This document shows, piece after piece, positions 36,568 through 55,068 of a DNA stretch of 64,000 bases (position 1 is its first letter; every line of letters begins with the position of its first letter). The translations under genes and the position numbers were made by a program. A model generated the notes under the pieces. The model did no database searches and had not been told where the DNA came from. It saw only the letters and a list, made by a program, of their open reading frames with translations. The stretch lies in sequence record OZ196212.1; one strand, 5' to 3'.

Positions 36568-36621
36568 TCTTAGTGGTATTAGTGAATTTAGTAGTATTAG
36601 AGATATTAGGAGTATTATATG
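36568..36621 (+). repeat. degenerate 9-bp tandem repeat (TATTAG core) overlapping RBS
   Basis: tcttagtgg tattagtga atttagtag tattagaga tattaggag tattatatg; preceded by hairpin 36546-36566. Confidence 0.7.
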
Positions 36622-37308
36622 AATCGTAAACTTGCACTGGTAGCAGCATTTGCAGCATTTGCAATGACTGGCTGTAATGATGTTACACTCGCAACAACAA
36701 CAAACGATAAAATTGTTGCAGTGCGTGATGTTTTAAATCACGAAGAATCTGTTATGATTAATCGCTGGCTTCAATTAGCAAGTGGCGATTCGTACTTGTA
36801 CGATGACATGTGGGCTGCGCTTGCAACTCGTAACAAGTATGGCGGTACGTCAAATAAACGCGCAGACTCAGAACTACCATTCTGTGATGTGATCGAGGGT
36901 GTCGTAAAGAGTGAAAAACGTATTCGTGATTCATTCAAAGGCACGTTGTCTAATCAGTGGAAGACGAAATACGGTTTGACTCTTGCTCAACAGTGCGATT
37001 ACACGCCACCACTGACGAAGAAAGAAAAAATGGCGTTGCTTGAAGAGCGAGAAATCGATCTTAAACTTGAAGACGCATCACCAAAGCCAACGACGATGAA
37101 CGAAGTCGTTGATTCGGTTAACACGTTGCTTGATCCGCATGAGTATGACTATCTGATTGAGTCTGCGCGTGAGTGTAAACGTGCTAAGGTGAAGTTGTTG
37201 AGTCTGACTAACGTAGGTCAACCATTGACGATACAAGACGGTGACGACGCTCGTAAGCTAATCATCGAATGTAAAATGCACAAACTAGAAGTGGAATTGA
37301 ACAAATGA
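36619..37308 (+). CDS. lipoprotein, paralog A
   Basis: Signal II with lipobox AMTG-C; similar to 51942..52661 including LEVELNK end. Confidence 0.85.
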   Translation: MNRKLALVAAFAAFAMTGCNDVTLATTTNDKIVAVRDVLNHEESVMINRWLQLASGDSYLYDDMWAALATRNKYGGTSNKRADSELPFCDVIEGVVKSEKRIRDSFKGTLSNQWKTKYGLTLAQQCDYTPPLTKKEKMALLEEREIDLKLEDASPKPTTMNEVVDSVNTLLDPHEYDYLIESARECKRAKVKLLSLTNVGQPLTIQDGDDARKLIIECKMHKLEVELNK

Positions 37309-38087: not shown

Positions 38088-38093
38088 TGTTTA

Positions 38094-38134
38094 AGCCCTC
38101 CTAAATATGTCATATAATCATATGCAGGAGGGCT
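38094..38134 (+). promoter_or_regulatory. late promoter inside an SD-sequestering hairpin
   Basis: agccctcct 38094-38102 pairs with aggagggct 38126-38134 (contains AGGAGG); CTAAATA at 38101-38107; inner atatg/catat. Confidence 0.75.
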
Positions 38135-38138
38135 ACGC

Positions 38139-38672
38139 ATGCCAATGCAAACATCGGGAGCTATTTCCCTTAACGATATCAAAACATACTTTGGCGGTGA
38201 TACGTCTGTCCCGATGAACTCATATTATCGAGGTGGCGCGTACATCCCCGACATTACAGAAAATGCAGCAATACCTACGTCTGGACAAATCAGTATAAAC
38301 AACTTCTACGGCGCTATGCGTCTAACTGCGGTTGATACTACTCGTGATACGAGTAGAAGTACTAATAGCACACGAACAACCTCGTATACATCTAGTTGGA
38401 CTACATCGTGGACTTCTACATGGCAAACATCGCGAGGGACAAGCCGAAGTACTGGTTATACAACGACGTGGTCGACAAGTACAGGGTGTGGTAAGGGTGT
38501 ATGTGGATCTCAGAACACGAGTCGAAGCACTTCAAGATCGACAGGTTACACAACATACTGGAACACGAGTCGAGGGACTTCGCGAGGGACTTCGCGAGGG
38601 ACAAGCCGAAGTACAGCATATTCATATACTACTACATGGTCGACAACATTCTCGACTCAAAAACCGGAATAA
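38139..38672 (+). CDS. putative virion fibre-tip protein: adhesin-like N-domain plus Thr/Ser-rich beta-hairpin
   Basis: SGAISL.DI...GG...SYYRGG...IPTSGQISI.NFYG N-domain; 4-residue T/S-R/W/Y repeats around CGKGVC. Confidence 0.8.
   Translation: MPMQTSGAISLNDIKTYFGGDTSVPMNSYYRGGAYIPDITENAAIPTSGQISINNFYGAMRLTAVDTTRDTSRSTNSTRTTSYTSSWTTSWTSTWQTSRGTSRSTGYTTTWSTSTGCGKGVCGSQNTSRSTSRSTGYTTYWNTSRGTSRGTSRGTSRSTAYSYTTTWSTTFSTQKPE
38430..38615 (+). repeat. 12-bp tandem repeats and a 23-bp duplication inside the T/S-rich gene
   Basis: cgagggacttcg x2 at 38571-38594; tcgcgagggacaagccgaagtac at 38430-38452 and 38592-38614. Confidence 0.9.
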
Positions 38673-38674
38673 TC

Positions 38675-38884
38675 ATGACAGACAGTGAGAAAAACGAGCT
38701 ACAACGGCTCAACAATGAAGTGAATCGTTTGAATGAAGTTTGTGCTAACTTACAAGAAAGTCAAACGATCATCCTTGAAACTATAATTGACCACATCGCG
38801 TCGCTAGATGCAGACCGCGATACATTATTGCGTAGTTACGACGATGCGATTCAACGTATCATCGATAAGCACAGTGGTGAATAA
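38675..38884 (+). CDS. small coiled-coil protein
   Basis: Start moved to ATG 38675; 69 aa heptad-like. Confidence 0.75.
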   Translation: MTDSEKNELQRLNNEVNRLNEVCANLQESQTIILETIIDHIASLDADRDTLLRSYDDAIQRIIDKHSGE

Positions 38885-39733
38885 ATGTTACATGAAATTC
38901 GTGAAGAGACTCAGGGGTTTAATAATGCGTGTCGTATAGGCACGCTTGTTCTCAGTGATCATAAGCCGTACGATTCGTGCTTCGAAGCACTTGAAATATT
39001 ACGCTCAAATGGATATCCGTGTAACTTCGATATCAATCATGACAATGGCGGCGGGTTTAGTACGAATGAATGGGGGTCTCAGTTAAGAGCATTTTCCGTT
39101 CGCTATATGAAATCCTCTGTTCATACAAAAGCACTTGTTCAGTCATTCTATGACAATGAGCATGATCATGTAATCGAGCTGCCGAAACGCGGGGACAAAT
39201 ACAAGCTAAAATCACTTGCTCCTTGTTTCAAGCAATACAATCGAATCGTGTTCATTGGTGGTACTAATCTGATTCATTCACATATGGATTTAGACAAGAT
39301 TGATGTCATTCTTGACATGGATTCTAGTGTCGTGATAAAGCCACACCCACTTACAAATGTACAAGACATGAAAATGTTGACCGAGCGTTATGGTAAAGGT
39401 CGCGTTCTGTACAACAAATTGAATGGGATCGAATTGCTGCAACAGTGTGAGCGTGCATGGATCCCCGTCTCGTCTGAAATGTGGTTCACTTGTGCCTTTT
39501 TAGGTATCCCGTACGACACGATCACGAAGTCTGACTACGAGATTGGTGGCACGTACTACGCGATGTTAGAAGCAATGAAGATCATTCAACGTGACACTAA
39601 GTTGCCGATGAACGTCATCGCGTCGCGAATCATCACATCACCAACGTCTGGTATATACACGTCGATGTATGCATTCAAACAAAACTATCCCAACTTCATT
39701 GCGAATGTTCAATCACATGGTGGGCGCGTATGA
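38885..39733 (+). CDS. KpsS/KpsC-like HP-motif glycosyltransferase-like protein
   Basis: VVIKPHP motif followed by SSEM....FLGIP, typical of the CMP-sugar transferase C-domain. Confidence 0.55.
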   Translation: MLHEIREETQGFNNACRIGTLVLSDHKPYDSCFEALEILRSNGYPCNFDINHDNGGGFSTNEWGSQLRAFSVRYMKSSVHTKALVQSFYDNEHDHVIELPKRGDKYKLKSLAPCFKQYNRIVFIGGTNLIHSHMDLDKIDVILDMDSSVVIKPHPLTNVQDMKMLTERYGKGRVLYNKLNGIELLQQCERAWIPVSSEMWFTCAFLGIPYDTITKSDYEIGGTYYAMLEAMKIIQRDTKLPMNVIASRIITSPTSGIYTSMYAFKQNYPNFIANVQSHGGRV

Positions 39734-40374
39734 TCAATTTAGACATCCATACTTTAATTTCAAGTGAGGCGCAAGTCGATTCACTTATAATGTTCAGCAC
39801 GTCGTTTCGATTGCATCACGCAGATAATGCAGGGGTCATTAAATGCGTCGTTCTCCCGCCAATCGATATAGAATCATTACCGTCAATTGATGGCGTGGAT
39901 TATGTTCGAACATTCACATCCAAATACGTATTCTTGTCAGTCGATAACTTTTTCATCAATAAGATCTATGCTGTGTATAGCGCACATCGAGACCGAAACT
40001 CAATTCGTAGCTATTTCAATGATGATGAATCGACAGACTTCATGATCGTTAATGATAACGATGGCGAAGATGTTGAGAATATTCATATGAATATCAATTT
40101 CAGTTTTGACAGTCATGGGGATCGAAATGATTACTATAAACGACTGGTTCAAATGAAAGACGTGGTAAGCATCAACACTAAGAAATTCAAGCTGACCGAC
40201 CGAACGCAAATAAACAGTTTGTACACTTTACTGTTCCCATGGGAGACTTACTTCGACTCGATGCGACGAGCAACTGGTCTAAGTGAAGAGTTTATCAGTG
40301 ATGTGATGTTCAATTGTCAACGATTTTCACATGGCATTGTATATCGCCATAGTGGTTTATTAAATGTGAGTTAA
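39730..40374 (+). CDS. hypothetical protein
   Basis: 214 aa in operon; no family recognised. Confidence 0.8.
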   Translation: MINLDIHTLISSEAQVDSLIMFSTSFRLHHADNAGVIKCVVLPPIDIESLPSIDGVDYVRTFTSKYVFLSVDNFFINKIYAVYSAHRDRNSIRSYFNDDESTDFMIVNDNDGEDVENIHMNINFSFDSHGDRNDYYKRLVQMKDVVSINTKKFKLTDRTQINSLYTLLFPWETYFDSMRRATGLSEEFISDVMFNCQRFSHGIVYRHSGLLNVS

Positions 40375-40376
40375 TT

Positions 40377-41063
40377 ATGAAAGAAGTTATATTGATATCA
40401 GGTCTAGACAGCATCGTTTTGTATGAAATGCTAAAGTCGGCTAGTCCGAATCTCATTCCAGTTTATTTCAAATGGGGATTTGACATTGATGACGCGGAAA
40501 TCAAGATGCTGCCGTCCGGTACTAAAATTCACGAAGTCCCTGAATGGATGCAATTTGACACCGATGGCAAGCTTGGTGGGGATGAGTGTATCAACTTAGA
40601 TGGGCGTGATACGATCATGATGAACTTGGTTATGCACATCTACAAGCCGTATGTTATCTACAAAGGCACGATTGCAAACGACACGTCATATGTGGAATCT
40701 CATGTTGAATTTACTGAGAAAATAAGTAGAACGTGGCGTCTTATCAATCGTCACGAATGTGACATTAAACATCCGTTTATAAAGAAGACTAAGCGTGATA
40801 TTATCGCGTATGCTAACAAGCTCGGAATTGACGCACGTGATTATCAATATTGCTACAATGCTGTGGGTAATTGTGGCGTATGTAATAAGTGTCGAATGAC
40901 TCGATTATTGAGTATGTATTCCGACAATCCTGACGTTGAATTTTTACGCAGTTATCTTGGTGAGTGTCAAAAATCAGCGACGAAGAAAATCGGCGACTAC
41001 TTGGTGTCGGGTGATGTCGTCGAAGAACTAACAACTTTTTTAAGGAAGTATAATGAAAATTGA
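40377..41063 (+). CDS. QueC (7-cyano-7-deazaguanine synthase)-like PP-loop ATPase, divergent
   Basis: ISGLDS (cf. SGGLDS), PF...TK..I, C-terminal YCY...CGVCNKC..R Zn site. Confidence 0.75.
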   Translation: MKEVILISGLDSIVLYEMLKSASPNLIPVYFKWGFDIDDAEIKMLPSGTKIHEVPEWMQFDTDGKLGGDECINLDGRDTIMMNLVMHIYKPYVIYKGTIANDTSYVESHVEFTEKISRTWRLINRHECDIKHPFIKKTKRDIIAYANKLGIDARDYQYCYNAVGNCGVCNKCRMTRLLSMYSDNPDVEFLRSYLGECQKSATKKIGDYLVSGDVVEELTTFLRKYNEN

Positions 41064-41724
41064 ACATCATTTGATTGATGGACGTGATTTGATTGTTATT
41101 GATGATGCGTTCTCAAGCGCAGATCTTAGCACAATATCACACGTCATTCATGGGATCACTGACGCTCATTGGGCTGAGGGGCACGACGAAAACTTGCTTC
41201 GATATTCAGGCATTCATGCCATGAACGTAGATGCAGGAACGGACAGTGCAGATAGCGTAATTCGCGGTGACTGTGTGTTTTTAGAAAACTTACCAGAACA
41301 CGAATTTATATGTGGGTTGGTTGACAGTGCGATCATCAATGCGTTCTCTACTGTGTCTATCGTAAGTGACGATGACAAGGCGAAGATACTAGAAGACAAG
41401 AACGAGTTTTTCTGCCGCGTGTTGCGATACATGCCTGGGTATTACGATGACTGTGCAGATGGCGACAACTTCTTGCACACGGACATTCGACTTGGGGTGA
41501 TGTTCACTCCCGTTATCAATCCAGAAGAGCCGCAAAGCACTCTTTATTACGAAGATGATAAATTCGAAACGCCTGTCCTGACACTCGATCACAAGCCCGG
41601 TCGTTTAGTTGTGTTTGACGGTCGAATTGTTCATGCTCCTAGTAAGTGTTTTAAAGTACCGCGCTATGCGATGTCGCTACACAACGACAATGATATGCGC
41701 CATTACTTGTCGAAGTTTAGATAG
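41053..41724 (+). CDS. 2OG-Fe(II) dioxygenase (prolyl-hydroxylase-like)
   Basis: HTD, KPGRLVVFDG...H, RY. Confidence 0.85.
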   Translation: MKIEHHLIDGRDLIVIDDAFSSADLSTISHVIHGITDAHWAEGHDENLLRYSGIHAMNVDAGTDSADSVIRGDCVFLENLPEHEFICGLVDSAIINAFSTVSIVSDDDKAKILEDKNEFFCRVLRYMPGYYDDCADGDNFLHTDIRLGVMFTPVINPEEPQSTLYYEDDKFETPVLTLDHKPGRLVVFDGRIVHAPSKCFKVPRYAMSLHNDNDMRHYLSKFR

Positions 41725-41730
41725 GTTATT

Positions 41731-42624
41731 ATGAGTTCAATCGAAAGAATAGCTGATAAAATGATTCACATTTATGATGATGGAATCAAGCGTGCGCAGT
41801 GGTACTTTGGTAGTCGAACTCATGACTTTTATCTGTACGGTGTCGGTGAACTACTTGACGTAGTTCGCCAGTACCCATTCATTGACATGCAGACTAAGCC
41901 AGTGGGTACGCTTGTTAAACGTGGCGAGCCTGCGATTGTTGTTACTATCAACTCAAACGAATTGTTGCAATATGGCAATATGATCGAGACGTTGATTTAC
42001 AATCGTATTTGGTATGCGTCAACCGTTGGTACAATTCTGCATAACATGCGCGATCATTTGCATTCGAATGGATTTGATGTTTATCGTGCATTTCCTCAGA
42101 TGGGTCGTGCAAGTGTCAATGAACATCAAACGAAAGTTGCTAGTGACATTTTCAGTCGTGTATTTTACAAGCTCAATGATTCGCTACGTTCAGTTGCGAC
42201 TCATAATGAAATACTCATGACTAGTGAGACGTTTTGTATTGAAAACTATCATAGTGTGATGGCTGATACGTACGACATACGCGAGTTTTGTAAACTTGCA
42301 AACTCACTGAACTATTCAGGTGAGATTATGGTTGATTCTAAGCCAATCATTGATAACATTGAATACGTGCTATCAGAAACGCCTAATACGGTATGCCAAG
42401 TTGAATCAGTGACACGAGAGGAATGGTACGACATTGTTACTCATTTCAGTGGGAATGAACGAGTGCTATTCGGAATTGGTAGTTGTTGTTTTACGAATGT
42501 GAATAGAGACACGCTTGGGTTCGTGTACAAGACGTGCGCGATACATCGAGGCGACGAGTGGATTGCTGTTAGTAAGCAGACTAAAAACAAAGAAACATTC
42601 AGTGGTTATGTAGAGGAATTGTGA
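41731..42624 (+). CDS. divergent, short type II phosphoribosyltransferase (NAPRT/NAMPT-like)
   Basis: GRAS, THNEILM, ADTYD, VDS, FGIGS, RDTLGFVYK...VSK; parallels NadV motifs GARG, EHS, DSYD, PDSG, FGMGG, RDT..FAMK. Confidence 0.7.
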   Translation: MSSIERIADKMIHIYDDGIKRAQWYFGSRTHDFYLYGVGELLDVVRQYPFIDMQTKPVGTLVKRGEPAIVVTINSNELLQYGNMIETLIYNRIWYASTVGTILHNMRDHLHSNGFDVYRAFPQMGRASVNEHQTKVASDIFSRVFYKLNDSLRSVATHNEILMTSETFCIENYHSVMADTYDIREFCKLANSLNYSGEIMVDSKPIIDNIEYVLSETPNTVCQVESVTREEWYDIVTHFSGNERVLFGIGSCCFTNVNRDTLGFVYKTCAIHRGDEWIAVSKQTKNKETFSGYVEEL

Positions 42625-43628
42625 TGAAGAAATACTGCATGGCGCCATTTGCGTCACCTGCAATCACGCCAGACGGATTTAAGCTGTGCTCATATCCCGG
42701 TCAGAAAGTGTACGACGATTTGAGCTTCTGGAATAGTGAAGAGATACAAGAACTGCGCAGGATCATTCGTGACGGCGGAACGCCCGAGTCGTGTGCTGCG
42801 TGTATGGCGTCACGTGATGGGATGTTAATTACGCACAACGTGCATGAATTACGCGATGATTACGTTCCGATCAATTTTAAGAACTTGTTCATTGCGAGAA
42901 GCAATAAGTGTGATTATGCATGTGAAATGTGCTCGTCATCAATATCGCATTCGTACGACAGGATGTTCAATGACGGTAAGATCGGGATTGTTGAGAACAA
43001 TTTTGACTTGACTCCGTATCTGCACGAGACTAGACACGCTGCTATTTCGGGTGGAAACCCTGTTTTAGATAAAAAACTCATTGAAATAATCGACCAGCTT
43101 GATGTTGATCGTCTGGAATCTATGTTCTTCACTAGTAACGGGTCGGTATTCCCAGATGCGTTTTTAGATTCAATCAAGCGATTGGAGCGTACTGACATCA
43201 GCTTGATATTTTCAATTGACGGCCCACAAGAATACAACGAAAGCGTTCGTATCGGCTGTAAGCAATCTCGTTTTTATAGCACAGTTAAGAAAGTAATGGA
43301 GCGTGTTCGTGACAATTCGAACATTTATACATGCTTCGAATTCACTGCTACTAACACGTCGATTACTAAAATGGCAGAAATGTATGATGAAATAATCATG
43401 ACTCTGACTAATGAAGAGCTGTCACGCATCAAATTTGTGTTCAATACATGTTCATTTCCGCATTCGATGTCATGTTTCAACTTGAGCAGTGAACAGTATG
43501 CTACCATCGAGGTGCAAATTGCATACTTTGAGTCGATTATGCGAACATCGCCACAGCATTTAACTGAAGCGATTCTGAAGAGACTCCGTGAGTACAAAGA
43601 ACGCTACGACTCGCAGCGAATTTTATAA
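42621..43628 (+). CDS. radical SAM enzyme with N-terminal twitch/SPASM-like Cys cluster
   Basis: YCMAPF...C...CAAC; CDYACEMC (CX3CX2C); GGNP; SNG; SIDG. Confidence 0.9.
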   Translation: MMKKYCMAPFASPAITPDGFKLCSYPGQKVYDDLSFWNSEEIQELRRIIRDGGTPESCAACMASRDGMLITHNVHELRDDYVPINFKNLFIARSNKCDYACEMCSSSISHSYDRMFNDGKIGIVENNFDLTPYLHETRHAAISGGNPVLDKKLIEIIDQLDVDRLESMFFTSNGSVFPDAFLDSIKRLERTDISLIFSIDGPQEYNESVRIGCKQSRFYSTVKKVMERVRDNSNIYTCFEFTATNTSITKMAEMYDEIIMTLTNEELSRIKFVFNTCSFPHSMSCFNLSSEQYATIEVQIAYFESIMRTSPQHLTEAILKRLREYKERYDSQRIL

Positions 43629-44717
43629 TATAATTGACTGATCGATGAAAGACAGTAACACAGGGGAAGACTTTTCTAAGTCTTCCCTTTTTGCTTTCTG
43701 CAACGTCTCTTTACAAAATGCGAGCCAATTCACGTGTGAGTATTTCGAGAATGATTGAACAGACTTCAACTCATTCAACACGCGTCTGTTTGCAGTGCAA
43801 TCGTCTGCGTTTTGCATTACCGAAATTGAGTGTTTCATGAAGTCTGGGTGCGCGTTTGACATAGCCATATTCGTCGGCATTGATATGAACCCAATTCCAA
43901 TCTCAATGTCAGGGAACGCACTCGTCAGTTCAGGGAATCGCTCGATGTTATACAGTGTAATCGTAGCAAGAAGAGACACATCGTACATGCTACGATAAGT
44001 CTTCGCCTTGCTAATGAACTCACAAAGCCGATTGTAGTTGATGAATCGTCGCTGCACGTTGTTCACATCTTCAACACCATCGATTGATATAACCAATCTA
44101 ACGTGCTTGCCTGACATGTGCAGGTTGAACATATGAGTGAAGAAATCGCTACCATCCCGCATCGTAGATGAATTACCATTTGTTACGATGGTCACTTCGT
44201 TTACATCGGCATCAATCAGAGATTCTACAAGTTCAGTCCCGCGCTTCATATCCTGCAAATTACCACCAAGTATTCGTATCGTATCTGCACCAGTCACATC
44301 ATTGATCGATTGTATACACTCATCGATATTGTCGATGTTTTGAATCTGTTCTGGGTTGTATTGTTTCGAATACGTTCGAGAAAACTCGTCGCCACACATT
44401 ATACACGCGCCTGAACACTCATTTGACGGGTACAATATCAAATTGCGCACATCGCTGACTGATACATTGGTTGAAATTACCGCGTTGTCTTGTTGGAATC
44501 GATGTTGTAGATCAGATGAAATACAATACTTGCACGAATCGGGTAGGTCATCGAATCGATGTTCGATCATTGCTTCACGCACGTCAGTGATTGTTTTGTT
44601 GTTTAATGCGCTTGATGCGTCAGTGTCATTGTAGCGTATGTATGACATACAGCATGAGCTATATGATTCAGCGGCAATCCCGAAGTCAGTGAATGGGGCA
44701 GTGCAAAGAGGTTTCAT
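43623..44717 (-). CDS. radical SAM enzyme with N-terminal twitch/SPASM-like Cys cluster
   Basis: CTAPF...SCC...CKYC; CSGACIMC; GGN; TNG; SIDG. Confidence 0.9.
   Translation of the reverse strand: MKPLCTAPFTDFGIAAESYSSCCMSYIRYNDTDASSALNNKTITDVREAMIEHRFDDLPDSCKYCISSDLQHRFQQDNAVISTNVSVSDVRNLILYPSNECSGACIMCGDEFSRTYSKQYNPEQIQNIDNIDECIQSINDVTGADTIRILGGNLQDMKRGTELVESLIDADVNEVTIVTNGNSSTMRDGSDFFTHMFNLHMSGKHVRLVISIDGVEDVNNVQRRFINYNRLCEFISKAKTYRSMYDVSLLATITLYNIERFPELTSAFPDIEIGIGFISMPTNMAMSNAHPDFMKHSISVMQNADDCTANRRVLNELKSVQSFSKYSHVNWLAFCKETLQKAKREDLEKSSPVLLSFIDQSIIL
43664..43692 (+). terminator. intrinsic terminator for the 38139-43628 operon, inside the convergent CDS
   Basis: gggaagactt-ttct-aagtcttccc followed by ttttt. 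Confidence 0.75.
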
Positions 44718-44753
44718 AGTTTATTCTCATAATATTCGATGTATAATTAATTC

Positions 44754-44760
44754 TATTTAG
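44754..44760 (-). promoter_or_regulatory. T4-type late promoter-like element
   Basis: CTAAATA on minus strand about 37 nt upstream of rSAM start 44717. Confidence 0.5.
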
Positions 44761-44770
44761 CGGGGTTTAT

Positions 44771-45694
44771 ATGAACCGAATAGCGTCATTCAATCGAGTC
44801 GATTCGTCATACGATTACATAACAGATAACGGGCTTGCCAATGTCCCGACAGTATTACAAGCACTGTACAATATGATGATTGCGACTGATCGCGATGTTG
44901 AATACGGAGTTTCAACTGACAGAACCGACGTTCTGTATCTCGGTATATGTTTTGTTGAATATTCATACAACACAGATCGCGAACATTTTAACGATGTCAT
45001 ACGCATGATTGGATCGTCGAATCGCATTGTGATTGTGTATAACTCATGGCAGGTCAAGGGTGCATTGAAATGGATTCGCGATAATGTCAATCTGAGTTCT
45101 TCGCTTGAGCGTGTACTCTCCGCTGATATTGCACTTGCACCGTTATATGAAAATCACGACGTTGAGTTGATAGAGCAAACATTCGGTCATCGCGTGTTGA
45201 CATACAACCCGTCGATGCATATTGATTGCAAAGACTACGGGACATTTACTCGAAACAAAAAACGACAAGTTGTGTATGGAGAGCTTGATATGAATCTCGC
45301 GTCTACGTTTACTCAACGTTTCAATATACCAGAATCAGAATTCTTGATGTTCAATTTCAAAAATGTCATACACGAAAAGCTGTTAGTTGAAAAGTATTAC
45401 AGCGAGTCGTGGTTTGTTTTGATGCCGTCTCACTTGGGTGATACGTGCGGTATGGGTTTCTGGCGTTCGAAAGTACAACACGCGATTAATGTAGGCTCGA
45501 TAATCATCACCGATGAGCATGAATATTGCAATCTCGGTGAAGCATTTCGCTATACGTACGACGACGTTCGCTGTATGAGCGACGACGAGCTTTTAGCGGT
45601 AGCACATGAACAATGTATCGCGTTTGAAATGAACCTCTCAGAGACGCGTACGCTTGCGAATTTCGACCAACAATTGAGGAGTATCAGCTTGTGA
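44771..45694 (+). CDS. GT-B-fold glycosyltransferase-like protein
   Basis: C-terminal VLMPSH..GFWRSK...AINVGSIII.D...F......MSDDEL..A.EQ; loosely similar to phage GT-B enzymes. Confidence 0.5.
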   Translation: MNRIASFNRVDSSYDYITDNGLANVPTVLQALYNMMIATDRDVEYGVSTDRTDVLYLGICFVEYSYNTDREHFNDVIRMIGSSNRIVIVYNSWQVKGALKWIRDNVNLSSSLERVLSADIALAPLYENHDVELIEQTFGHRVLTYNPSMHIDCKDYGTFTRNKKRQVVYGELDMNLASTFTQRFNIPESEFLMFNFKNVIHEKLLVEKYYSESWFVLMPSHLGDTCGMGFWRSKVQHAINVGSIIITDEHEYCNLGEAFRYTYDDVRCMSDDELLAVAHEQCIAFEMNLSETRTLANFDQQLRSISL

Positions 45695-47025
45695 GTAGAA
45701 TCACATTAGCAATTCCGATGGCTGGGATGGGTAGTCGAATGGGTGCGATATCAGAAATCGTACCGAAAGGTTTGATCAACTATCACAATCACACATTCTT
45801 GTATCACATTTATCGTTATTATGAAGACGCGTTCGACGAGTGTGTAGTTACCGTGAACTCGAAATTCAGACCGATGCTTGAGCAGTACGCAGAGAACTTC
45901 AATCTGACGCTGACTATAATCAATGATGATACGTATGACGGTAACTCGAACATTCTGCATCACTGTAAAGGCGATGTGATCTTGAACTGGTGCGATGTTG
46001 TCCCGGTTGACGTTGACGTTCGCGACTTGAAATCAGGCGTCACGGTGTTCACTAAAGACGGTACGGGTCGTTTCGTCTACGATAACGGGGTAACTGAAGT
46101 TTCAACTGACTCTGGTGATTTCTGTGGGATATACGCGATACGCGACTGTGAATATGACATCGTTAATGGTGATTTCGTAGATGTCATGATCGCGAATAAC
46201 TTTGATGTTGATTTGCGCGAGTGTGATGTCGTTGATCTCGGAAGCTTTGATAAGCTTTCTTTGACGCAAGACACGCTACCGACTGCGAGATATTTCAATG
46301 AAATCACATACCATGACGGGGTGATTCGAAAGCGTGCAGTTGGCGACGAGCTTAGTCGATTCAAAATATCTAGAGAGATTGAGGTATTAAAGGAAGGGCG
46401 CGTTGGTTACGTTGAATTGATTGATCATGATGATGATTCATATACCATGCCAGTCTTGTACGGAACGATGCCGACTCGGCTAACACCGCCTATGATCAAC
46501 AAGGGTGATGATGTCAGCGAAGATGATATTCGCGTCGAAATATCTGAGCGAGTTCTATCTAGAATCGAAAGCATCACTGAATATACGCACATTGATATTG
46601 ATGAGCTGCGCGTTAAGTTGCATGAACTTGAATCGTATGTGATAGAAAATACTCATGCTTTCTATGACATACACGGTGATATGATTTGCGACAACGCGTT
46701 CGATACTGACAATGGGGTTGTGTTTATTGACCCGCGTGGTTACTTCGGTAATGGAACACGCGGGCCGATTGAATATGACACGAGCAAGTTTCTATACAGT
46801 GTTAACGGTTACTTTGATTTCAATTACAACGTCATGTACGACGGTGATTTCGAGAAGTACGACAATCACAGTGAAATGTCATTGCTTGAAGAAGCATGGG
46901 TCGCGACTCACTGGCTTGCATTGGCAGGATTCTTCAAGAACAACCCATCGAAAGCAATTGGCGCATATCACATTGGTATGAACAAGTTGTGTCGTTTCAT
47001 CGCGACTCTAAGCGCGTCTCGTTGA
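45691..47025 (+). CDS. nucleotidyltransferase fused to APH/choline-kinase-like domain
   Basis: IPMAGMGSRM...PKGL NTP-transferase start; HGDM..DN and FIDPRG kinase motifs. Confidence 0.8.
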   Translation: MSRITLAIPMAGMGSRMGAISEIVPKGLINYHNHTFLYHIYRYYEDAFDECVVTVNSKFRPMLEQYAENFNLTLTIINDDTYDGNSNILHHCKGDVILNWCDVVPVDVDVRDLKSGVTVFTKDGTGRFVYDNGVTEVSTDSGDFCGIYAIRDCEYDIVNGDFVDVMIANNFDVDLRECDVVDLGSFDKLSLTQDTLPTARYFNEITYHDGVIRKRAVGDELSRFKISREIEVLKEGRVGYVELIDHDDDSYTMPVLYGTMPTRLTPPMINKGDDVSEDDIRVEISERVLSRIESITEYTHIDIDELRVKLHELESYVIENTHAFYDIHGDMICDNAFDTDNGVVFIDPRGYFGNGTRGPIEYDTSKFLYSVNGYFDFNYNVMYDGDFEKYDNHSEMSLLEEAWVATHWLALAGFFKNNPSKAIGAYHIGMNKLCRFIATLSASR

Positions 47026-47540
47026 TTAACGTCGCGCTCAACTAGTATGCACTTCACACCTGCGCAGTTGTCTTCAACGTCGCGTATATTATCGATACGG
47101 TCATCAATGAAGTATTCAACGTTGTCTATTTCATTGATGTACTTTGACTTTGATTCATGAAACTCGATGCTGATCAGCTCGTCAATTAGAGTCGGGAACA
47201 ACGCATTTAAGTTGAATTGTCTATTGCACCATGCAGTGCGACTCCATCCGAACTTGGTAAGCGCGATTATCTTGTGCGTCTTTGCTAATTCGGTAAGGCA
47301 TTCTAAAGCATCTTCATACGCAGGCATGTATCTCGCGCTTGCGTGTTCAGTATAGGCGCCCATCAGCTTACCAATTTCACTATTCGATGCATTGACGAAC
47401 ATTTCACTTGCTCTAATGTCAGTCGGTATCAGTGACAAGTCGTTGAGCTTGTGTGCCATCCCGATATCATTCATGAAAAACGGAAGATTCGATTTCCAAT
47501 TCAAAAGTACCCCATCTACGTCAATTACTATCGTTTTCAT
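46968..47540 (-). CDS. HAD-family phosphatase (T4 gp30.2-like)
   Basis: Start moved to ATG 47540; IDVDGVLLNW, FIDD. Confidence 0.8.
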   Translation of the reverse strand: MKTIVIDVDGVLLNWKSNLPFFMNDIGMAHKLNDLSLIPTDIRASEMFVNASNSEIGKLMGAYTEHASARYMPAYEDALECLTELAKTHKIIALTKFGWSRTAWCNRQFNLNALFPTLIDELISIEFHESKSKYINEIDNVEYFIDDRIDNIRDVEDNCAGVKCILVERDVNQRDALRVAMKRHNLFIPM

Positions 47541-47563
47541 TATAAATATCCATGTAAATAAAG

Positions 47564-47570
47564 TATTTAG
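47564..47570 (-). promoter_or_regulatory. T4-type late promoter-like element
   Basis: CTAAATA on minus strand about 24 nt upstream of ATG 47540. Confidence 0.45.
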
Positions 47571-47601
47571 AATTTTTTTTTGATTTATTTTCATTTTGTT
47601 G

Positions 47602-47630
47602 TTGACAGATGTTGTAGAAAATGTAATTAT
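47602..47630 (+). promoter_or_regulatory. sigma70-type promoter
   Basis: TTGACA, 17 nt, AATTAT, preceded by a T-rich UP-like tract. Confidence 0.55.
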
Positions 47631-47688
47631 GTATACATCAGCTCAACACTGAAACAACAAACAAAACAATCTTTAAAAGGAAGATAAC

Positions 47689-47895
47689 ATGAAAACATTA
47701 AAAACAATCTCTCTAGCAGTATTACTTACATTCGCATCAGCTTCAGCATTCGCAGGCGGCACTATGGGTGGTAACCCTGGCTTCGAAATGTGTAAGATTG
47801 GCGCTATCAAATGTGGTGTACCGCTTAAAGTGAAAACTGAAAAAGCTGAAGCTGTTAAAGTTGAAGTTGAAACTGTTAAGGCTGAAACTAAGTAA
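47689..47895 (+). CDS. small secreted protein (Sec signal, two Cys)
   Basis: MKTLK-hydrophobic-ASAFA|G; CKIGAIKC; K/E/V-rich tail; AAGGA RBS. Confidence 0.8.
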   Translation: MKTLKTISLAVLLTFASASAFAGGTMGGNPGFEMCKIGAIKCGVPLKVKTEKAEAVKVEVETVKAETK

Positions 47896-47910
47896 GCGTT
47901 AACACCATCA

Positions 47911-47942
47911 AAAGCACTGTCATTTGACGGTGCTTTTTTTTA
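47911..47942 (+). terminator. intrinsic terminator
   Basis: aaagcactgtca / tgacggtgcttt stem followed by T-tract. Confidence 0.85.
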
Positions 47943-48033
47943 ACTGAGAAATGTTTATCGGCGTGAAATAGTGCTCTATAATCAAATCTCAATGAACAAT
48001 AATGTTCACAATCGCATATTTGGGGAGTCCATC

Positions 48034-51870: not shown

Positions 51871-51881
51871 TCATTTAGTTG

Positions 51882-51910
51882 TTGACAATGCCAGTGAGAA
51901 AGCCGATAAT
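51882..51910 (+). promoter_or_regulatory. sigma70-type early promoter
   Basis: TTGACA, 17 nt, GATAAT. Confidence 0.8.
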
Positions 51911-51941
51911 TCTCTCACTGGCAAACACAGAGAGAAAAATA

Positions 51942-52661
51942 ATGAAAAAACTATTTACAGCAGCAGCACTAATCGGTTCACTATTCCTAGTTGGTTGTAA
52001 CGAAACAACTGACAACACCGACAACGATCTTTTACTGAATGCATTGCCTGCAATGTCGAAAACTGAAAAAGATATGCTTGATCATTTGACTCAATCAGCA
52101 TACTTGAGCTATCACAACGATACGTATGCAGAGATTATTCGCACTCGTATCACATTCGGTCGCGACGTGACGCCACGCCCCGATGAACTTGTACCGTTCT
52201 GTGATGTAATTGGTACTGTGAACGCTGACGAGAAATCTCGCGATGTTGTGGGTCGTCACTTTACTCTGAATTCTCAGTGGTTCGAGAAATACGGTATCAC
52301 TCTGACTACACAGTGTAATCAAATTCAATACGACAAAGAACAGATTGAACAAGCGCGTCAACGCATGATCGAACAAGCAAAAGCTGACGAACTTGAAGTA
52401 TCAAACTCAGTTGTTTCGAAAGAAGCAGTACGAGTTGAGAAGATTCTAGAAGACACAGTGATCATCAAAGATGAAGCTGTACTGTCACCTGAATTGGTAC
52501 GTGAGCTGCGTCAATCAGTTACTGACTGTAATCGCGCTAAAATCAAACTAATCGGTATCGTTGATTCTGGTGAGACTTTGACAACTACACACTACGATGA
52601 CGTGCAAAGTCTTGTGCTTCAGTGTGAAATGCATCAACTTGAAGTTGAATTGAATAAATAA
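51942..52661 (+). CDS. lipoprotein, paralog B
   Basis: Start moved to ATG 51942; lipobox FLVG-C; PFCDVI, QW..KYG.TL..QC, C.RAK.KL, C.MH.LEVELNK shared with 36619. Confidence 0.85.
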   Translation: MKKLFTAAALIGSLFLVGCNETTDNTDNDLLLNALPAMSKTEKDMLDHLTQSAYLSYHNDTYAEIIRTRITFGRDVTPRPDELVPFCDVIGTVNADEKSRDVVGRHFTLNSQWFEKYGITLTTQCNQIQYDKEQIEQARQRMIEQAKADELEVSNSVVSKEAVRVEKILEDTVIIKDEAVLSPELVRELRQSVTDCNRAKIKLIGIVDSGETLTTTHYDDVQSLVLQCEMHQLEVELNK

Positions 52662-52737: not shown

Positions 52738-53793
52738 TTATTTTACCATTTTGATTTCTATCTTGTTGGTCATGTATGCCATTTTCTTTTCGAACTCGAC
52801 ATCATATTCTGGTCGATGTTCATACTCAACTGACAACATTTCTTTCAAGCAACGAAACAGCTCGTTCTTGTAGTACCCTTCTTTCATGCCTTGCATTTGC
52901 TTGTATTGCTTCTGCATAGCTTCTTTGATGATATCGGGGTGCATGAACTTGATTGACATTTCACGCGGTGCTTTCACAGTACCGAAATCAACGTACACTT
53001 GAGCCTTTTCTGCGACTTGAATGAAGTCGTAGATTGTGTCGTAGCTCATGCGCGATAGCGTGTGGTGCATACACAAGTGTTTGCTGTGTGCTTTAAGAAT
53101 CGGTACGTTAGCAAGCATCAAGTCGTGATCGATATTCTGGCGTATGTATTCGTTGCGCTCTTTACCACCATCACATGAGATCGTGAACACAATTCGTTCG
53201 CGGTATTCTTTACACATTGCAAGAATCTTTTTAGCTAATGGTGTGTGCAGCACAGTTCCGTTTGTCAGAATGAACACTTCTGCTTTAGTGTCTTCAAGCA
53301 CTTCTTTCAGCACTTCAAGAGTACGCTTGTCCATGAACGGTTCACCGCCATACAGAACAACAGTTTCAACGCCTTTCGGGATGCTGAAGTCAAGCTGCTT
53401 GTAGTCGTATTCATCTTCTATGTCGTACAAGTCCATGTACGTCTTGCTGTTCTTGCCGAAACACATACGACATGCAAGGTTACATTTGTTTGACATCAAG
53501 ATTTGAATCGTTCGTGGGTGCTCTTCTAACGCTTCATATTCGAAGTATTTCTGGTCAGAAAGTTCACCGTAGCTCATACACTCTTTGCAGTATTCTGGTA
53601 ACGTGTCGTAGTCGAACATGCGTTCGCGCACTTCATTGATGATATCAGAGTGCCACCAGTCTTCAACGTTCTTGAATGGCTCACTCAACTGAGAGCAGCA
53701 AATATGATAGCCGTCTGGCTTTGCGTCGCGTGTATTGAATGGAGAGCCGCACAGCGGCTTTCTCCCGTCTTTAAATCCGAACTTATCTAACAT
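52738..53793 (-). CDS. radical SAM enzyme with N-terminal twitch/SPASM-like Cys cluster
   Basis: LCGSPF...ICC...CKEC; CNLACRMC; GGEP; TNG; SCDG. Confidence 0.9.
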   Translation of the reverse strand: MLDKFGFKDGRKPLCGSPFNTRDAKPDGYHICCSQLSEPFKNVEDWWHSDIINEVRERMFDYDTLPEYCKECMSYGELSDQKYFEYEALEEHPRTIQILMSNKCNLACRMCFGKNSKTYMDLYDIEDEYDYKQLDFSIPKGVETVVLYGGEPFMDKRTLEVLKEVLEDTKAEVFILTNGTVLHTPLAKKILAMCKEYRERIVFTISCDGGKERNEYIRQNIDHDLMLANVPILKAHSKHLCMHHTLSRMSYDTIYDFIQVAEKAQVYVDFGTVKAPREMSIKFMHPDIIKEAMQKQYKQMQGMKEGYYKNELFRCLKEMLSVEYEHRPEYDVEFEKKMAYMTNKIEIKMVK

Positions 53794-54062
53794 TAGTTTA
53801 ACTCATCTAATAGTGACTGGAATTCTTCGTCACGCGCAGCATCAATTGTGCCAGTCATGAGTGCTTCAAGAGCCGATAGAGATTGAATCTCTGGTGCTTT
53901 TGGTCGAAGATCTTCGAGAATGTGAATCAACGATTCTTGTGGTAAATCGTTATACACGATTTCGTCTGGTAATTCGTGTTTGTAAACACAGCCATCACCC
54001 CAATCGATTACGACTGCGTGTTCCCATTTGTCAATTTCTAGTATTTTAAAGTTCGGTTTCAT
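53793..54062 (-). CDS. small acidic hypothetical protein
   Basis: 89 aa coupled between GT4 and rSAM. Confidence 0.8.
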   Translation of the reverse strand: MKPNFKILEIDKWEHAVVIDWGDGCVYKHELPDEIVYNDLPQESLIHILEDLRPKAPEIQSLSALEALMTGTIDAARDEEFQSLLDELN

Positions 54063-55068
54063 GTTTTAATCCCCAGAGTGTTTCCCACTGCTCTCTTGAC
54101 TGAGCGCGGTACATTTCAATATTCAATTTTTCATGTGGTTTGTTGATAACTTCTTTAACGATGTTCGCCAAGTTACTATTGTTTATATCAGCGAATTGAA
54201 CCGGAAATATGAAGTCGCGTGTATACGGTGCATCGTATTGCACGACGCACGGGATGTATTGACTCGCTTCTAATATTGCATACGGCATGATCTCGATGTG
54301 AGACATGTGAAGCAAGCATTTACTCTTCATCATCGCAGCGATTACTTTCTCGCGTGGCTGACATACGTGAACTTTGTAGTCTAACCCAGGTGGAGGAGTA
54401 GTCGTTCCCGTGCTGTATACATGCACTTTAAGCCCGCTCTTAGCTAACGAGCGAAGCATTTCGGGTATTTGCTTACGTTTGTATGCGCCAGAAACAATAA
54501 CTACGTCAGTCTCTTCAGCAGCGTCTAGTTCTTCTTGTGATATCGTGGGTAGTTCGAATGGCTCAAACGCAGTGACATGTTTGCCACCCATTAGATGATC
54601 GCCCCAATACTTGATGCCGTCAGATTGACATACGTTAGTCACGAGTCGTTCCATTCCCATCATTTGGCGCCACTGTTCAAGATTGTACATTTTGTTGATG
54701 TCCATGTACTTCTTGTAGCTCTCAGGCACGATTAAGTCACCGAAGTGATGTTGGTTATAGCATTTGCGATTCGCTTCAATACAAGCGCGTAGAGCTTCAA
54801 ATGAGTGCGTATAGATGATAGTGTCGTCATCTAGTGATTGTATCACCATCGCGTTTGCTTTGTAGTCATCAAATGCGCGATTGGTAAGAACATGTTCGCA
54901 ACCGAAGTCCCAGTATTTTGCATGAGGGCAATATTTGTCACCGAGTACAATCACTTTGACATCGCAATTATACGTCTTCATTAATCGGACGTGGTCTTGA
55001 ATGAATGTATAGATACCGCCACCGATACCTAGCATAAAATCAGTGACCACATAACGAACTTTTTTCAT
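54046..55068 (-). CDS. GT-B (GT4-like) glycosyltransferase
   Basis: GIGGG.....I N-terminal motif; C-terminal EIMPYAILEA (EX7E) then PCVV. Confidence 0.75.
   Translation of the reverse strand: MKKVRYVVTDFMLGIGGGIYTFIQDHVRLMKTYNCDVKVIVLGDKYCPHAKYWDFGCEHVLTNRAFDDYKANAMVIQSLDDDTIIYTHSFEALRACIEANRKCYNQHHFGDLIVPESYKKYMDINKMYNLEQWRQMMGMERLVTNVCQSDGIKYWGDHLMGGKHVTAFEPFELPTISQEELDAAEETDVVIVSGAYKRKQIPEMLRSLAKSGLKVHVYSTGTTTPPPGLDYKVHVCQPREKVIAAMMKSKCLLHMSHIEIMPYAILEASQYIPCVVQYDAPYTRDFIFPVQFADINNSNLANIVKEVINKPHEKLNIEMYRAQSREQWETLWGLKHETEL

Follow-up and report, generated by a model that had tools for sequence, protein, structure and literature searches.

A conserved three-gene phage module, found in an exchangeable cassette of a Vibrio phage and beside tail-fibre genes elsewhere, suggests a sugar-coated appendage

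A stretch of 64,000 nucleotides from sequence record OZ196212.1, which we refer to as the window, contains at positions 38,139 to 47,025 a run of genes that a preliminary description took for a system that chemically decorates a virion fibre. Comparison with other phage genomes and with metagenomes establishes, at the sequence level, that the first three genes of this run form one conserved phage module, consisting of a threonine/serine (T/S)-rich protein, a helical protein of ~60-70 amino acids (aa) and an enzyme of ~290 aa that resembles GT-B glycosyltransferases. Because this trio recurs beside tail-fibre genes in many unrelated, mostly uncultured phages, it suggests a widespread and previously undescribed way of sugar-coating a phage appendage. 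The original proposal of a structural substrate plus modifying enzymes is thus well supported by comparative genomics for the first three genes, but not beyond them. The members of the trio are:

38139..38672, plus strand: 177-aa protein (phrog_30374), with an N-domain at residues 1-66 and a low-complexity region at residues 67-177
38675..38884, plus strand: 69-aa helical protein, the middle member of the trio
38885..39733, plus strand: 282-aa GT-B-like protein (phrog_30602), with invariant or nearly invariant D49, K105, Y106, G126, N128, K152, H154, P155, E198 and G256

All of the open reading frames (ORFs) in the preliminary description are present where it placed them. The 8.9-kb region is 100% identical to that of Vibrio phage D527 and 99.2-100% identical to that of 15 further Vibrio phage genomes (~253 kb; isolated from seawater or oyster), which include 6E35.1a (Straboviridae, host V. 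crassostreae). The same gene order is kept in KVP40 (KVP40.0254-0262, then nadV). The near-identity to the D527 group and the gene order common with KVP40 identify the source of the window as a KVP40-like, T4-type Vibrio jumbo phage.

As first described, the 177-aa protein is rich in Thr and Ser. Residues 67-177 are dominated by T, S, R, W and Y, with period-4 repeats of the T-S-R-G type and a central pair of cysteines, and the composition of these C-terminal 111 aa is 32% T, 23% S, 10% R and 9% Gly. The Thr positions of the protein recur with a period of 4. The AlphaFold2 (AF2) model has a predicted local distance difference test score (pLDDT) of 41.8 and is without secondary structure in the T/S part, which is probably disordered. 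Such a model gives no basis for the needle that had been proposed, or for a beta-helix. The reading frame is kept in the more distant Vibrio phages KVP40, F86 and D479, and no signal peptide was found in the protein. The T/S-rich protein of the D527 group has 93% identity to that of the 6E35.1a group (window 38139-38672 versus L002:8001-8534), whereas the adjoining enzyme and a NAMPT-like protein encoded further downstream are 99.6-100% identical; judged from these alignments, the low-complexity part evolves faster than the adjoining enzymes.

Residues 1-66 contain an internal repeat of an S-G-x-I-S type motif. Scans of PHROGs and NCBIfam with this N-domain gave phrog_30374 only, a family of unknown function, and no match to a known family. 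The N-domain heads many phage proteins with unrelated C-termini, some Gly-rich (with PF21722 or PF05268 hits), some Ig-like and others of different kinds. On two long metagenome contigs, these proteins are encoded in tail modules; in one they follow tape-measure and GpJ-like genes, and in the other they lie inside a late block that ends with an SU10-type portal gene. Since it is found in tail modules and is joined to unrelated C-termini, the N-domain looks like an attachment module of tail appendages. Four proteins of 150-170 aa (P0007, P0009, P0010 and P0011) have S-G-x-I-S half-motifs at both ends with a variable insert between them, and the N-domain may be two short clasps rather than one domain. 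The T-even gp38-type fibre-tip adhesins are also small proteins, in which the N-terminal module is conserved and the distal part is variable and rich in repeats. However, a PF05268 (gp38 adhesin) hit was obtained on one Gly-rich N-domain relative only, and the window protein does not have the Gly-rich motifs of this family.

The 282-aa protein encoded by the third gene has no Pfam or NCBIfam hit. A word-indexed search with this protein alone gave two proteins, and one with an alignment seeded with relatives from a phage database gave 29, none of which carries a precomputed Pfam domain. A profile search of 1.84 billion representatives then returned 384 clusters (formed at 50% identity) at E<=1e-3 and 213 at E<=1e-30. 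By sequence, the family is a compact and discrete one of stand-alone proteins of ~290 aa, and it was previously unnamed. Conservation was measured over 168 members that have at most 50% identity. Conservation is 100% at Y106, N128, K152, H154 and P155, 99% at K105, G126 and G256 and 98% at D49 and E198. These ten positions, nine of them polar or Gly and one Pro, make an active-site-like pattern.

The AF2 model of the 282-aa protein is of good quality (pLDDT 81, predicted template modelling score 0.82). It has the two Rossmann-like halves of a GT-B enzyme, with the predicted donor site in the C-terminal half, at low TM-scores. The 50 best fold matches in the PDB are all GT-B enzymes, including the domain of WaaA that binds CMP-Kdo (cytidine monophosphate-activated 3-deoxy-D-manno-oct-2-ulosonic acid), SdgB, EarP and OGT. 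The TM-scores of these matches are only 0.25-0.36, in line with the reduced N-terminal half of the phage protein. In a viral structure library, the orthologues are followed, as the first hits that carry a name, by 'capsule polysaccharide biosynthesis' proteins of Tetraselmis virus (TM-score 0.45) and by various transferases. Single-sequence searches of the PDB with the 282-aa protein, and with the 307- and 444-aa proteins described below, gave nothing usable. The family profile, when compared with PDB sequences, hit only KpsC (E=0.0047) and WbbB (E=1.5), over ~70 residues, and the K-x-H-P of the family falls on the HP motif of KpsC (6MGB) and WbbB (5FA0). Since the fold hits are exclusively GT-B enzymes and the K-x-H-P lies on this HP motif, we infer that the 282-aa protein works like a GT-B transferase with a CMP- or CDP-activated substance as its donor, but we do not assign it to GT107 or GT99. 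The transferase with an HP motif that had been read from the sequence therefore stands, as a predicted function.

KpsC/KpsS (GT107) and WbbB (GT99) are retaining beta-Kdo transferases and GT-B enzymes of the 'Capsule_synth' type. They have in common with the phage enzyme a GT-B-like structure and the HP motif, H154-P155 in the phage protein, and the alignment covers both K-x-H-P and the S-x-x-G-helix segment that follows it. The phage enzyme differs in that it is short and stand-alone, has a reduced N-terminal half, matches marginally and has no Pfam or NCBIfam model. In addition, the acceptor of KpsC and WbbB is a glycolipid, whereas the presumed acceptor of the phage enzyme is a protein.

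The second gene is small. The 69-aa protein has 16 invariant positions in four Vibrio phage orthologues. In IMG/VR, an ORF of 50-60 aa lies between a T-rich ORF and the enzyme gene in 55 of 65 loci. These small proteins have a recognisable central motif in common, and they match the Vibrio phage protein weakly in a profile-profile comparison (E=0.0036), in the same register.

Searches by tblastn with the 282-aa protein found relatives beyond the Vibrio phages. For example, in the T7-like Caulobacter phage Lullwater the tail fibre gene gp40 is followed by gp41, which encodes a 215-aa T/S/Y/W/R-rich low-complexity protein, and then by gp42, the enzyme relative (E=4e-19), which keeps K-P-H-P-L-T. 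In the T4-like Caulobacter phage Cr30, a baseplate wedge gene, two large fibre-like ORFs and the genes for a 66-aa coiled coil, a fibre-tip-like protein, a 116-aa T/Y-rich protein and the K-x-H-P enzyme come in this order ahead of a neck gene. Stenotrophomonas phage DLP_6 encodes a 57-aa coiled coil and the enzyme immediately ahead of its neck genes. These phages (Lullwater-type and Cr30 for Caulobacter, and DLP_6) and the KVP40-like Vibrio phages are the only carriers in a phage database of 50,697 records, and the enzyme is annotated as a hypothetical protein in the records inspected.

The metagenome loci L012-L017 repeat the order of T-rich ORF and enzyme. In L012, a Peptidase_S74 fibre is followed by a 497-aa protein with repeats of the T-S-R-S-T-S-Y type and the enzyme; in L013, an uncalled T/S/R-rich ORF and a 76-aa helical ORF precede the enzyme; in L014, L016 and L017, a protein of 965-1,425 aa (36-39% Thr) and a 58-aa helical ORF do so; and in L015, a T4-like contig, a fibre-tip fragment is followed by a 153-aa protein (31% Thr) and the enzyme. 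The marine T-rich proteins (L014, L016, L041 and other IMG/VR loci) are as long as 1,548 aa, and the repeated motif at their N-terminus is a different one.

From IMG/VR, 153 confirmed loci were collected with one degenerate pattern, and 80 of them were kept. As a strict test, we asked for an ORF on the same strand that ends directly upstream of the enzyme gene and has at least 50% Thr plus Ser in a 60-aa window. Among the 72 loci with enough upstream sequence, 65 passed; elsewhere, only eight such ORFs occur in 690 kb. Many of the loci are near-duplicates, and after collapsing them at 90%, 60% and 40% enzyme identity, 23/31, 5/12 and 3/9 clusters passed, respectively. Nine loci that fail the test fall in three groups. 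In the first group, the T-rich position is taken by a protein that contains 17-19% Thr and 10-17% Tyr (L020/Cr30, L024, L038, L040 and L051) or is rich in T/S (T 16%, S 10%; L021); in L018, nothing but a fibre-tip-like ORF lies upstream; and L025, L084 and L085 have only a helical ORF. Taken together, a T-rich ORF is paired with the enzyme in at least eight lineages of <40% enzyme identity, which include the Vibrio phages, Lullwater, L012, L013 and L015, and the trio usually lies directly after tail-fibre genes in phage lineages that are otherwise unrelated to the window phage.

T-rich ORFs are often missed or split by gene callers (38139-38672; L010:11263-11775; L013:7202-7714). The T/S ORF is annotated as three short ORFs in D527 and as small minus-strand ORFs in D479, and it is uncalled in L013. 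Consequently, the module is under-counted in the databases.

Many of the loci also contain additional partner genes. In 70 of the 89 enzyme-carrying loci outside the Vibrio phages, a gene for a 314-aa protein, which has no PDB or NCBIfam match, overlaps the stop codon of the enzyme gene in marine loci. Two other marine partners are a 217-aa protein of a GT29-like family with sialyl-motif-like sequences in 45 loci (ST3Gal-I, E=3.8e-4) and a 218-aa protein (phrog_28018) in 41 loci; neither PDB nor NCBIfam gave a match to the partner families A5 and A7. The presence of at least one extra transferase-like enzyme beside the T-rich ORF fits the building of a glycan on a mucin-like chain.

How might the three proteins act together? 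We give about an even chance to the reading that the K-x-H-P enzyme, with the helical protein, puts a CMP- or CDP-activated group on the Ser and Thr residues of the adjacent, tail-anchored chain. The invariant K-x-H-P pocket, which aligns with the HP motif where KpsC and WbbB bind CMP-Kdo, would bind the activated donor, and the enzyme would move the donor group onto the many Ser/Thr hydroxyls of its neighbour. The N-domain would anchor the disordered chain to the tail appendage, the small helical protein would serve as an adaptor or chaperone for the transfer and the product would be a mucin-like, sugar-coated appendage at or near the tail fibre. In the minimal versions, such as those of the Caulobacter phages, the donor would come from the host.

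Small coiled-coil proteins are classic fibre chaperones of T4-type phages, and one could view the trio as a fibre-assembly set instead, with the T-rich protein as a distal tip or adhesin, the helical protein as a chaperone of the gp57A kind and the 282-aa protein as a folding or attachment factor with a relict transferase-like fold. In accord with this, the trio directly follows fibre-tip genes in Lullwater, Cr30, L015, L024 and L051, and some N-domain relatives have the Gly-rich C-termini with PF21722 or PF05268 hits. However, ten positions that are 98-100% conserved in 168 divergent members are the pattern of an active site and not of a chaperone, the K-x-H-P aligns with the nucleotide-sugar site of KpsC and WbbB, and more glycosyltransferase-like genes stand beside the trio in marine loci. 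We therefore consider a pure assembly set unlikely and prefer the transfer of a sugar-like group to the T-rich chain.

The virions of some mycobacteriophages are O-glycosylated by phage-encoded glycosyltransferases. As in the present case, these phages encode their own transferase(s) next to a Ser/Thr-rich structural protein that is thought to be decorated. However, their targets are the C-termini of capsid or tail-tube proteins, whereas here there is a separate T-rich appendage protein with a helical partner, seen as genes alone; the enzyme family and the hosts, which here are Gram-negative and marine, also differ. This O-glycosylation is mentioned in PMC11256854. A second comparison is with Gram-positive bacteria, in which serine-rich repeats and Ser/Thr-rich intrinsically disordered regions are glycosylated by SdgB-type enzymes (PMC12041528). 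Those systems also use low-complexity Ser/Thr chains as dedicated substrates of GT-B enzymes, and SdgB is among the fold hits, but they are cellular and have no sequence relationship to the phage enzyme beyond the fold. Phage-encoded decoration of virion proteins is thus known, and it is the enzyme family and the three-part architecture that are, as predicted from these comparisons, new. Literature searches turned up no account of the module, KVP40.0254-0261 or the Caulobacter phage genes.

In the window phage the trio is part of a larger unit. Vibrio phage K566 and the window agree at 98-99% identity as far as position 38089 and once more from 48009 onward; in place of 38090-48008, K566 carries a different cassette of 12.9 kb. 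Alignment of the two thus delimits 38090-48008 as a discrete, exchangeable cassette of KVP40-like Vibrio phages, and since K566 swaps the entire block, the genes considered here form one exchangeable unit. The cassette and the genes that follow the trio are:

38090..48008, no strand: exchangeable 9.9-kb cassette, with every gene discussed here, the HAD-like gene and short ORFs; it ends just before nadV
39730..40374, plus strand: 214-aa protein (phrog_30897), found in Vibrio phages only; overlaps the stop of the enzyme gene
40377..41063, plus strand: QueC-family (PP-loop type) protein (PADLOC QueC, E=2.8e-9)
41053..41724, plus strand: putative 2-oxoglutarate (2OG)-Fe(II) oxygenase, a weak call (FlmC-family model; phrog_274, E=6.7e-5, C-terminal part only)
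41731..42624, plus strand: 297-aa shortened, highly divergent NAMPT-family protein (phrog_448, E=8e-25; NF006629, 59.6 bits)
42621..43628, plus strand: radical SAM (rSAM) protein with an N-terminal twitch-type domain (NF033640, 100.6 bits; phrog_14086, E=1.8e-77)
43623..44717, minus strand: second N-twitch rSAM protein, convergent (NF033640, 113.5 bits; phrog_14086, E=2.5e-39)
44771..45694, plus strand: 307-aa protein with no assigned function; orthologue in F86, absent from KVP40
45691..47025, plus strand: 444-aa protein with a sugar-phosphate nucleotidyltransferase-like N-domain (phrog_4098, E=2e-61); absent from KVP40
46968..47594, minus strand: HAD-like protein (phrog_420, E=9e-40); KVP40.0262 is annotated 30.2 (T4 30.2-like), PF00702

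The cassette is conserved in 35 Vibrio phage records, down to ~31-37% protein identity, and this conservation marks the cluster as more than chance. Searches for the N-domain of the trio, for the K-x-H-P enzyme and for the NAMPT-like gene returned 35 Vibrio phage records in each case. KVP40, F86 and D479, which have 31-56% enzyme identity, retain a core that comprises the T/S-rich protein, the helical protein, the enzyme, the 214-aa protein, the QueC-family and NAMPT-like proteins, the rSAMs and the HAD-like protein. In the near-identical records of D484 and D525, one rSAM gene is annotated instead of two and there are two extra hypothetical ORFs, so one rSAM gene may be interrupted. Two phrog_8733 paralogues (36619-37308 and 51879-52661, plus strand) flank the region of the cassette and nadV.

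The cassette of K566 (OZ196521.1, ~159954-172862; L099:7954-20001 and L098) encodes a 475-aa lipoprotein with a lipobox, four N-twitch rSAMs, a GT8-like protein, a PagP-like acyltransferase and several proteins without assigned function. An LPS galactosyltransferase is a relative of the GT8-like protein, and PagP acts on lipid A, so that this content might point to remodelling of the host envelope (lipopolysaccharide, LPS, or capsule), for example against superinfection or against the sticking of progeny to debris, with the T/S-rich protein in an accessory role, inside the cell or exported. Among solved structures, the closest relatives of the K-x-H-P enzyme do act on capsule and LPS. On the other hand, the T/S-rich protein is without a signal peptide, other phages have the N-domain and the trio within tail or fibre modules and a host glycan as substrate would leave the strict adjacency of enzyme and T-rich ORF unexplained. 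Envelope remodelling is thus quite improbable, somewhat more so than a fibre-assembly role, and decoration of the T-rich chain remains our preferred reading.

The genes found only in Vibrio phages are more difficult to interpret, and the names that they first received fared unevenly. The 214-aa protein has 42 invariant positions in four orthologues. It is not significantly related to the marine 314-aa family (E=0.061), and other comparisons of the 214- and 307-aa proteins with that family or with the enzyme family were not significant either (E=0.083 and E=0.54). The QueC-like call holds at the family level: the PADLOC QueC match covers residues 4-180, and S-G-(L/I)-D-S and C159, C166, C169 and C172 are invariant in four orthologues. 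It does not hold for the QueC equivalog, since TIGR00364 gave 32.6 bits against a cut-off of 150.3, over the C-terminal half only. KVP40-like genomes encode separate preQ genes, namely GTP cyclohydrolase I, QueC, QueE and a QueF-like reductase (PMC3468402), which makes the cassette gene a second, divergent copy.

The 2OG-Fe(II) oxygenase survives only as a tentative assignment, with a FlmC-family match of 22.7 bits (cut-off 240) limited to residues 163-210; the gene is absent in KVP40 and D479 and present in F86. The divergent phosphoribosyltransferase is borne out as a very divergent, shortened relative of NAMPT, with 59.6 bits against a cut-off of 405 for NAMPT/NadV, and only two blocks of ~45-55 aa align with the phage's own NadV. 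The preliminary description was also right about the twitch rSAM and the second rSAM. NF033640 is the best model for both, nearly over their full length, but neither reaches the subfamily cut-off of 170, and by this measure they are relatives rather than certified members. The GT-B assignment of the 307-aa protein found no support, as there is no hit in PHROGs, NCBIfam, PDB or PADLOC and no profile similarity to the K-x-H-P family. In the proposed fusion of a nucleoside triphosphate transferase and a kinase, the N-domain of the 444-aa protein is weakly recognised (residues 8-137; NCBIfam cytidylyl- and uridylyltransferase models, E=7e-4 to 9e-3, far below cut-offs; HddC-like and UGPase matches in the PDB, E ~0.07), and the kinase half is recognised by no tool among the family scans and the PDB.

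A third N-twitch rSAM gene is present in the window (52738-55068, minus strand; NF033640, 136 bits), followed by a short ORF and a gene for a 340-aa protein, whose orthologue KVP40.0274 is annotated PF00534 (glycosyltransferase group 1). N-twitch rSAMs therefore adjoin transferase-like genes repeatedly, in the cassette, at 52738-55068 and beside the GT8-like gene of K566. The rSAM family occurs in 40 records, the extra ones being K566, K567, nt-1 (two records) and CZ01.

What would all of these enzymes do? As a weaker part of our proposal, the 214-aa, QueC-family, 2OG, NAMPT-like, two rSAM, 307-aa, nucleotidyltransferase fusion and HAD proteins would supply or tailor an unusual donor or glycan, or would constitute a second pathway that shares the cassette with the trio. 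The latter is a substantial possibility, if a less probable one than not. According to it, the downstream enzymes belong to a separate pathway of nucleotide, cofactor or nucleic-acid modification in the same hypervariable island, for example a 7-deazapurine or nicotinamide-ribose derivative for DNA, tRNA or NAD metabolism, and this is compatible with the trio as a pair of substrate and enzyme. All of the family affinities are to nucleobase or nucleotide enzymes, nadV adjoins the cassette and a genuine preQ pathway is encoded elsewhere in KVP40-like phages (PMC3468402). The trio of other phage lineages lacks all of these enzymes behind it, rSAMs occur without it in nt-1, CZ01, K566 and K567, and a terminator and a convergent gene divide the plus-strand block from the later genes. 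However, the cassette has no transglycosylase of the DpdA/TGT type and no hydroxymethylase, for which reason we rejected a DNA hypermodification cluster; all of the matches are far below curated cut-offs, which makes the classical activities improbable; as many records have the N-domain as have the enzyme or the NAMPT-like gene, and the block is swapped as one piece; and N-twitch rSAMs lie repeatedly beside glycosyltransferase-like genes (52738-55068/KVP40.0274 and the GT8-like gene of K566).

A precedent for an unusual use of such a protein exists. QueC-family enzymes conjugate a 7-deazapurine to protein in type IV CBASS (Cap9) and in QatC (10.1101/2025.04.06.647259; PMC13279940). The cassette protein is likewise a divergent QueC-family member that is clearly not the biosynthetic QueC, and KVP40-like relatives make 7-deazapurine precursors elsewhere in the genome (PMC3468402). 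The cassette differs in having no Cap10/TGT-like or QatB partner and no defence context, and Vibrio phages are not mentioned in the 2026 survey of the QueC family. In a bolder version of our proposal, many Gram-negative and marine phages would bear a mucin-like Thr/Ser chain of up to ~1,500 residues on their fibres, which a dedicated KpsC-like transferase would decorate with the aid of the helical protein, and in KVP40-like phages the QueC-family, NAMPT-like, 2OG and N-twitch rSAM enzymes would build an unprecedented adduct, possibly a nucleobase- or nicotinamide-ribose-derived group on the protein or its glycan. This version is doubtful.

One might also think of the T/S/R/W/C-rich chain as the precursor of a ribosomally synthesized and post-translationally modified peptide (RiPP), cross-linked or otherwise tailored by the two twitch rSAMs. 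The substrate-like gene is first in the operon and the rSAMs have weak hits to peptide-maturase models. However, none of these hits comes near its cut-off, the rSAMs have their twitch domain at the N-terminus and belong to a family distinct from the SPASM maturases, T-rich partners are as long as 1,548 aa and none of the 89 enzyme-carrying loci outside the Vibrio phages has an rSAM. A precursor and its maturase should occur together; the rSAMs do not travel with the trio, and we rejected a RiPP system as very improbable.

Several observations weigh against the decoration of a tail appendage, or against parts of it. The chemistry of every cassette gene is read from sequences and models alone, the fold matches of the enzyme have low TM-scores (~0.3-0.46) and its sequence matches to KpsC and WbbB are marginal. 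At 40% enzyme identity, only three of the nine evaluable clusters pass the strict test, and the rest have T/Y-rich proteins or none. In the two long metagenome contigs mentioned above, N-domain proteins lie in tail modules without any cassette enzyme, so the N-domain by itself does not, on this evidence, imply the enzymes. The cassette is surrounded by metabolic or early-type genes (nadV and the ribonucleotide reductase genes, RNR) and lies outside the structural module. The twitch rSAMs of nt-1, CZ01, K566 and K567 all occur in the absence of the trio, and no other protein of the window has a relative (E<1e-3) in the 89 non-Vibrio loci. No virion proteome was found in the literature for any carrier. 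The preliminary description had itself named, as an observation that would count against it, that relatives of the first protein mostly occur without the enzymes. This is so for the N-domain and seven of the eight enzymes, but not for the HP-motif enzyme. Its view that eight tailoring enzymes all serve the fibre protein is accordingly not upheld: the link between the downstream enzymes and the T/S-rich protein is drawn from co-location only, and 0/89 loci carry the others.

The signals for expression add a little to this picture. The two elements in question are:

38094..38134, plus strand: stable RNA hairpin whose 3' arm holds the Shine-Dalgarno sequence of the first gene
43662..43689, plus strand: intrinsic-terminator-like hairpin with a 12-bp stem, 5 GC pairs and a T-run, which closes the plus-strand block

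The second of these agrees with the terminator that had been reported, being a strong hairpin right after the plus-strand block, and it overlaps the 3' end of the convergent rSAM gene. The first has a minimum free energy of -25.6 kcal/mol (z = -4.7; 0/200 shuffles as stable) and no counterpart in KVP40, and its loop contains an A/T-rich stretch with partial likeness to a late-promoter core. Some T4 genes are translated only from transcripts that start within a hairpin that masks the Shine-Dalgarno sequence, and the hairpin at 38094-38134 resembles these. The operon had been called late-type. A scan of the 64 kb for the T4-type late octamer, an 8-base consensus, gave two occurrences, which is the chance level, and none within or upstream of the operon; a late promoter is therefore not assigned, and this too counts against a structural role. 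A partial match (6/8) ~30 nt upstream in three of four lineages was not counted as evidence.

Phage-encoded decoration of virion proteins has so far been documented mainly in mycobacteriophages. If our reading is true, T4-like, T7-like and many uncultured marine phages have a comparable system, which employs another enzyme family and acts on a low-complexity protein dedicated to it. A glycan coat on fibre appendages would matter for how phages recognise receptors, adhere to mucus or particles and are shielded, and it would account for a class of genes next to fibre genes that are annotated as 'hypothetical'. Through the cassette, there is also a route to the functions of N-twitch rSAM, truncated NAMPT-like and divergent QueC-family proteins. 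Finally, it is swapped wholesale between co-occurring, oyster-associated Vibrio phages that are 98-99% identical, which makes it a candidate locus of variation in the arms race between these phages and their hosts.

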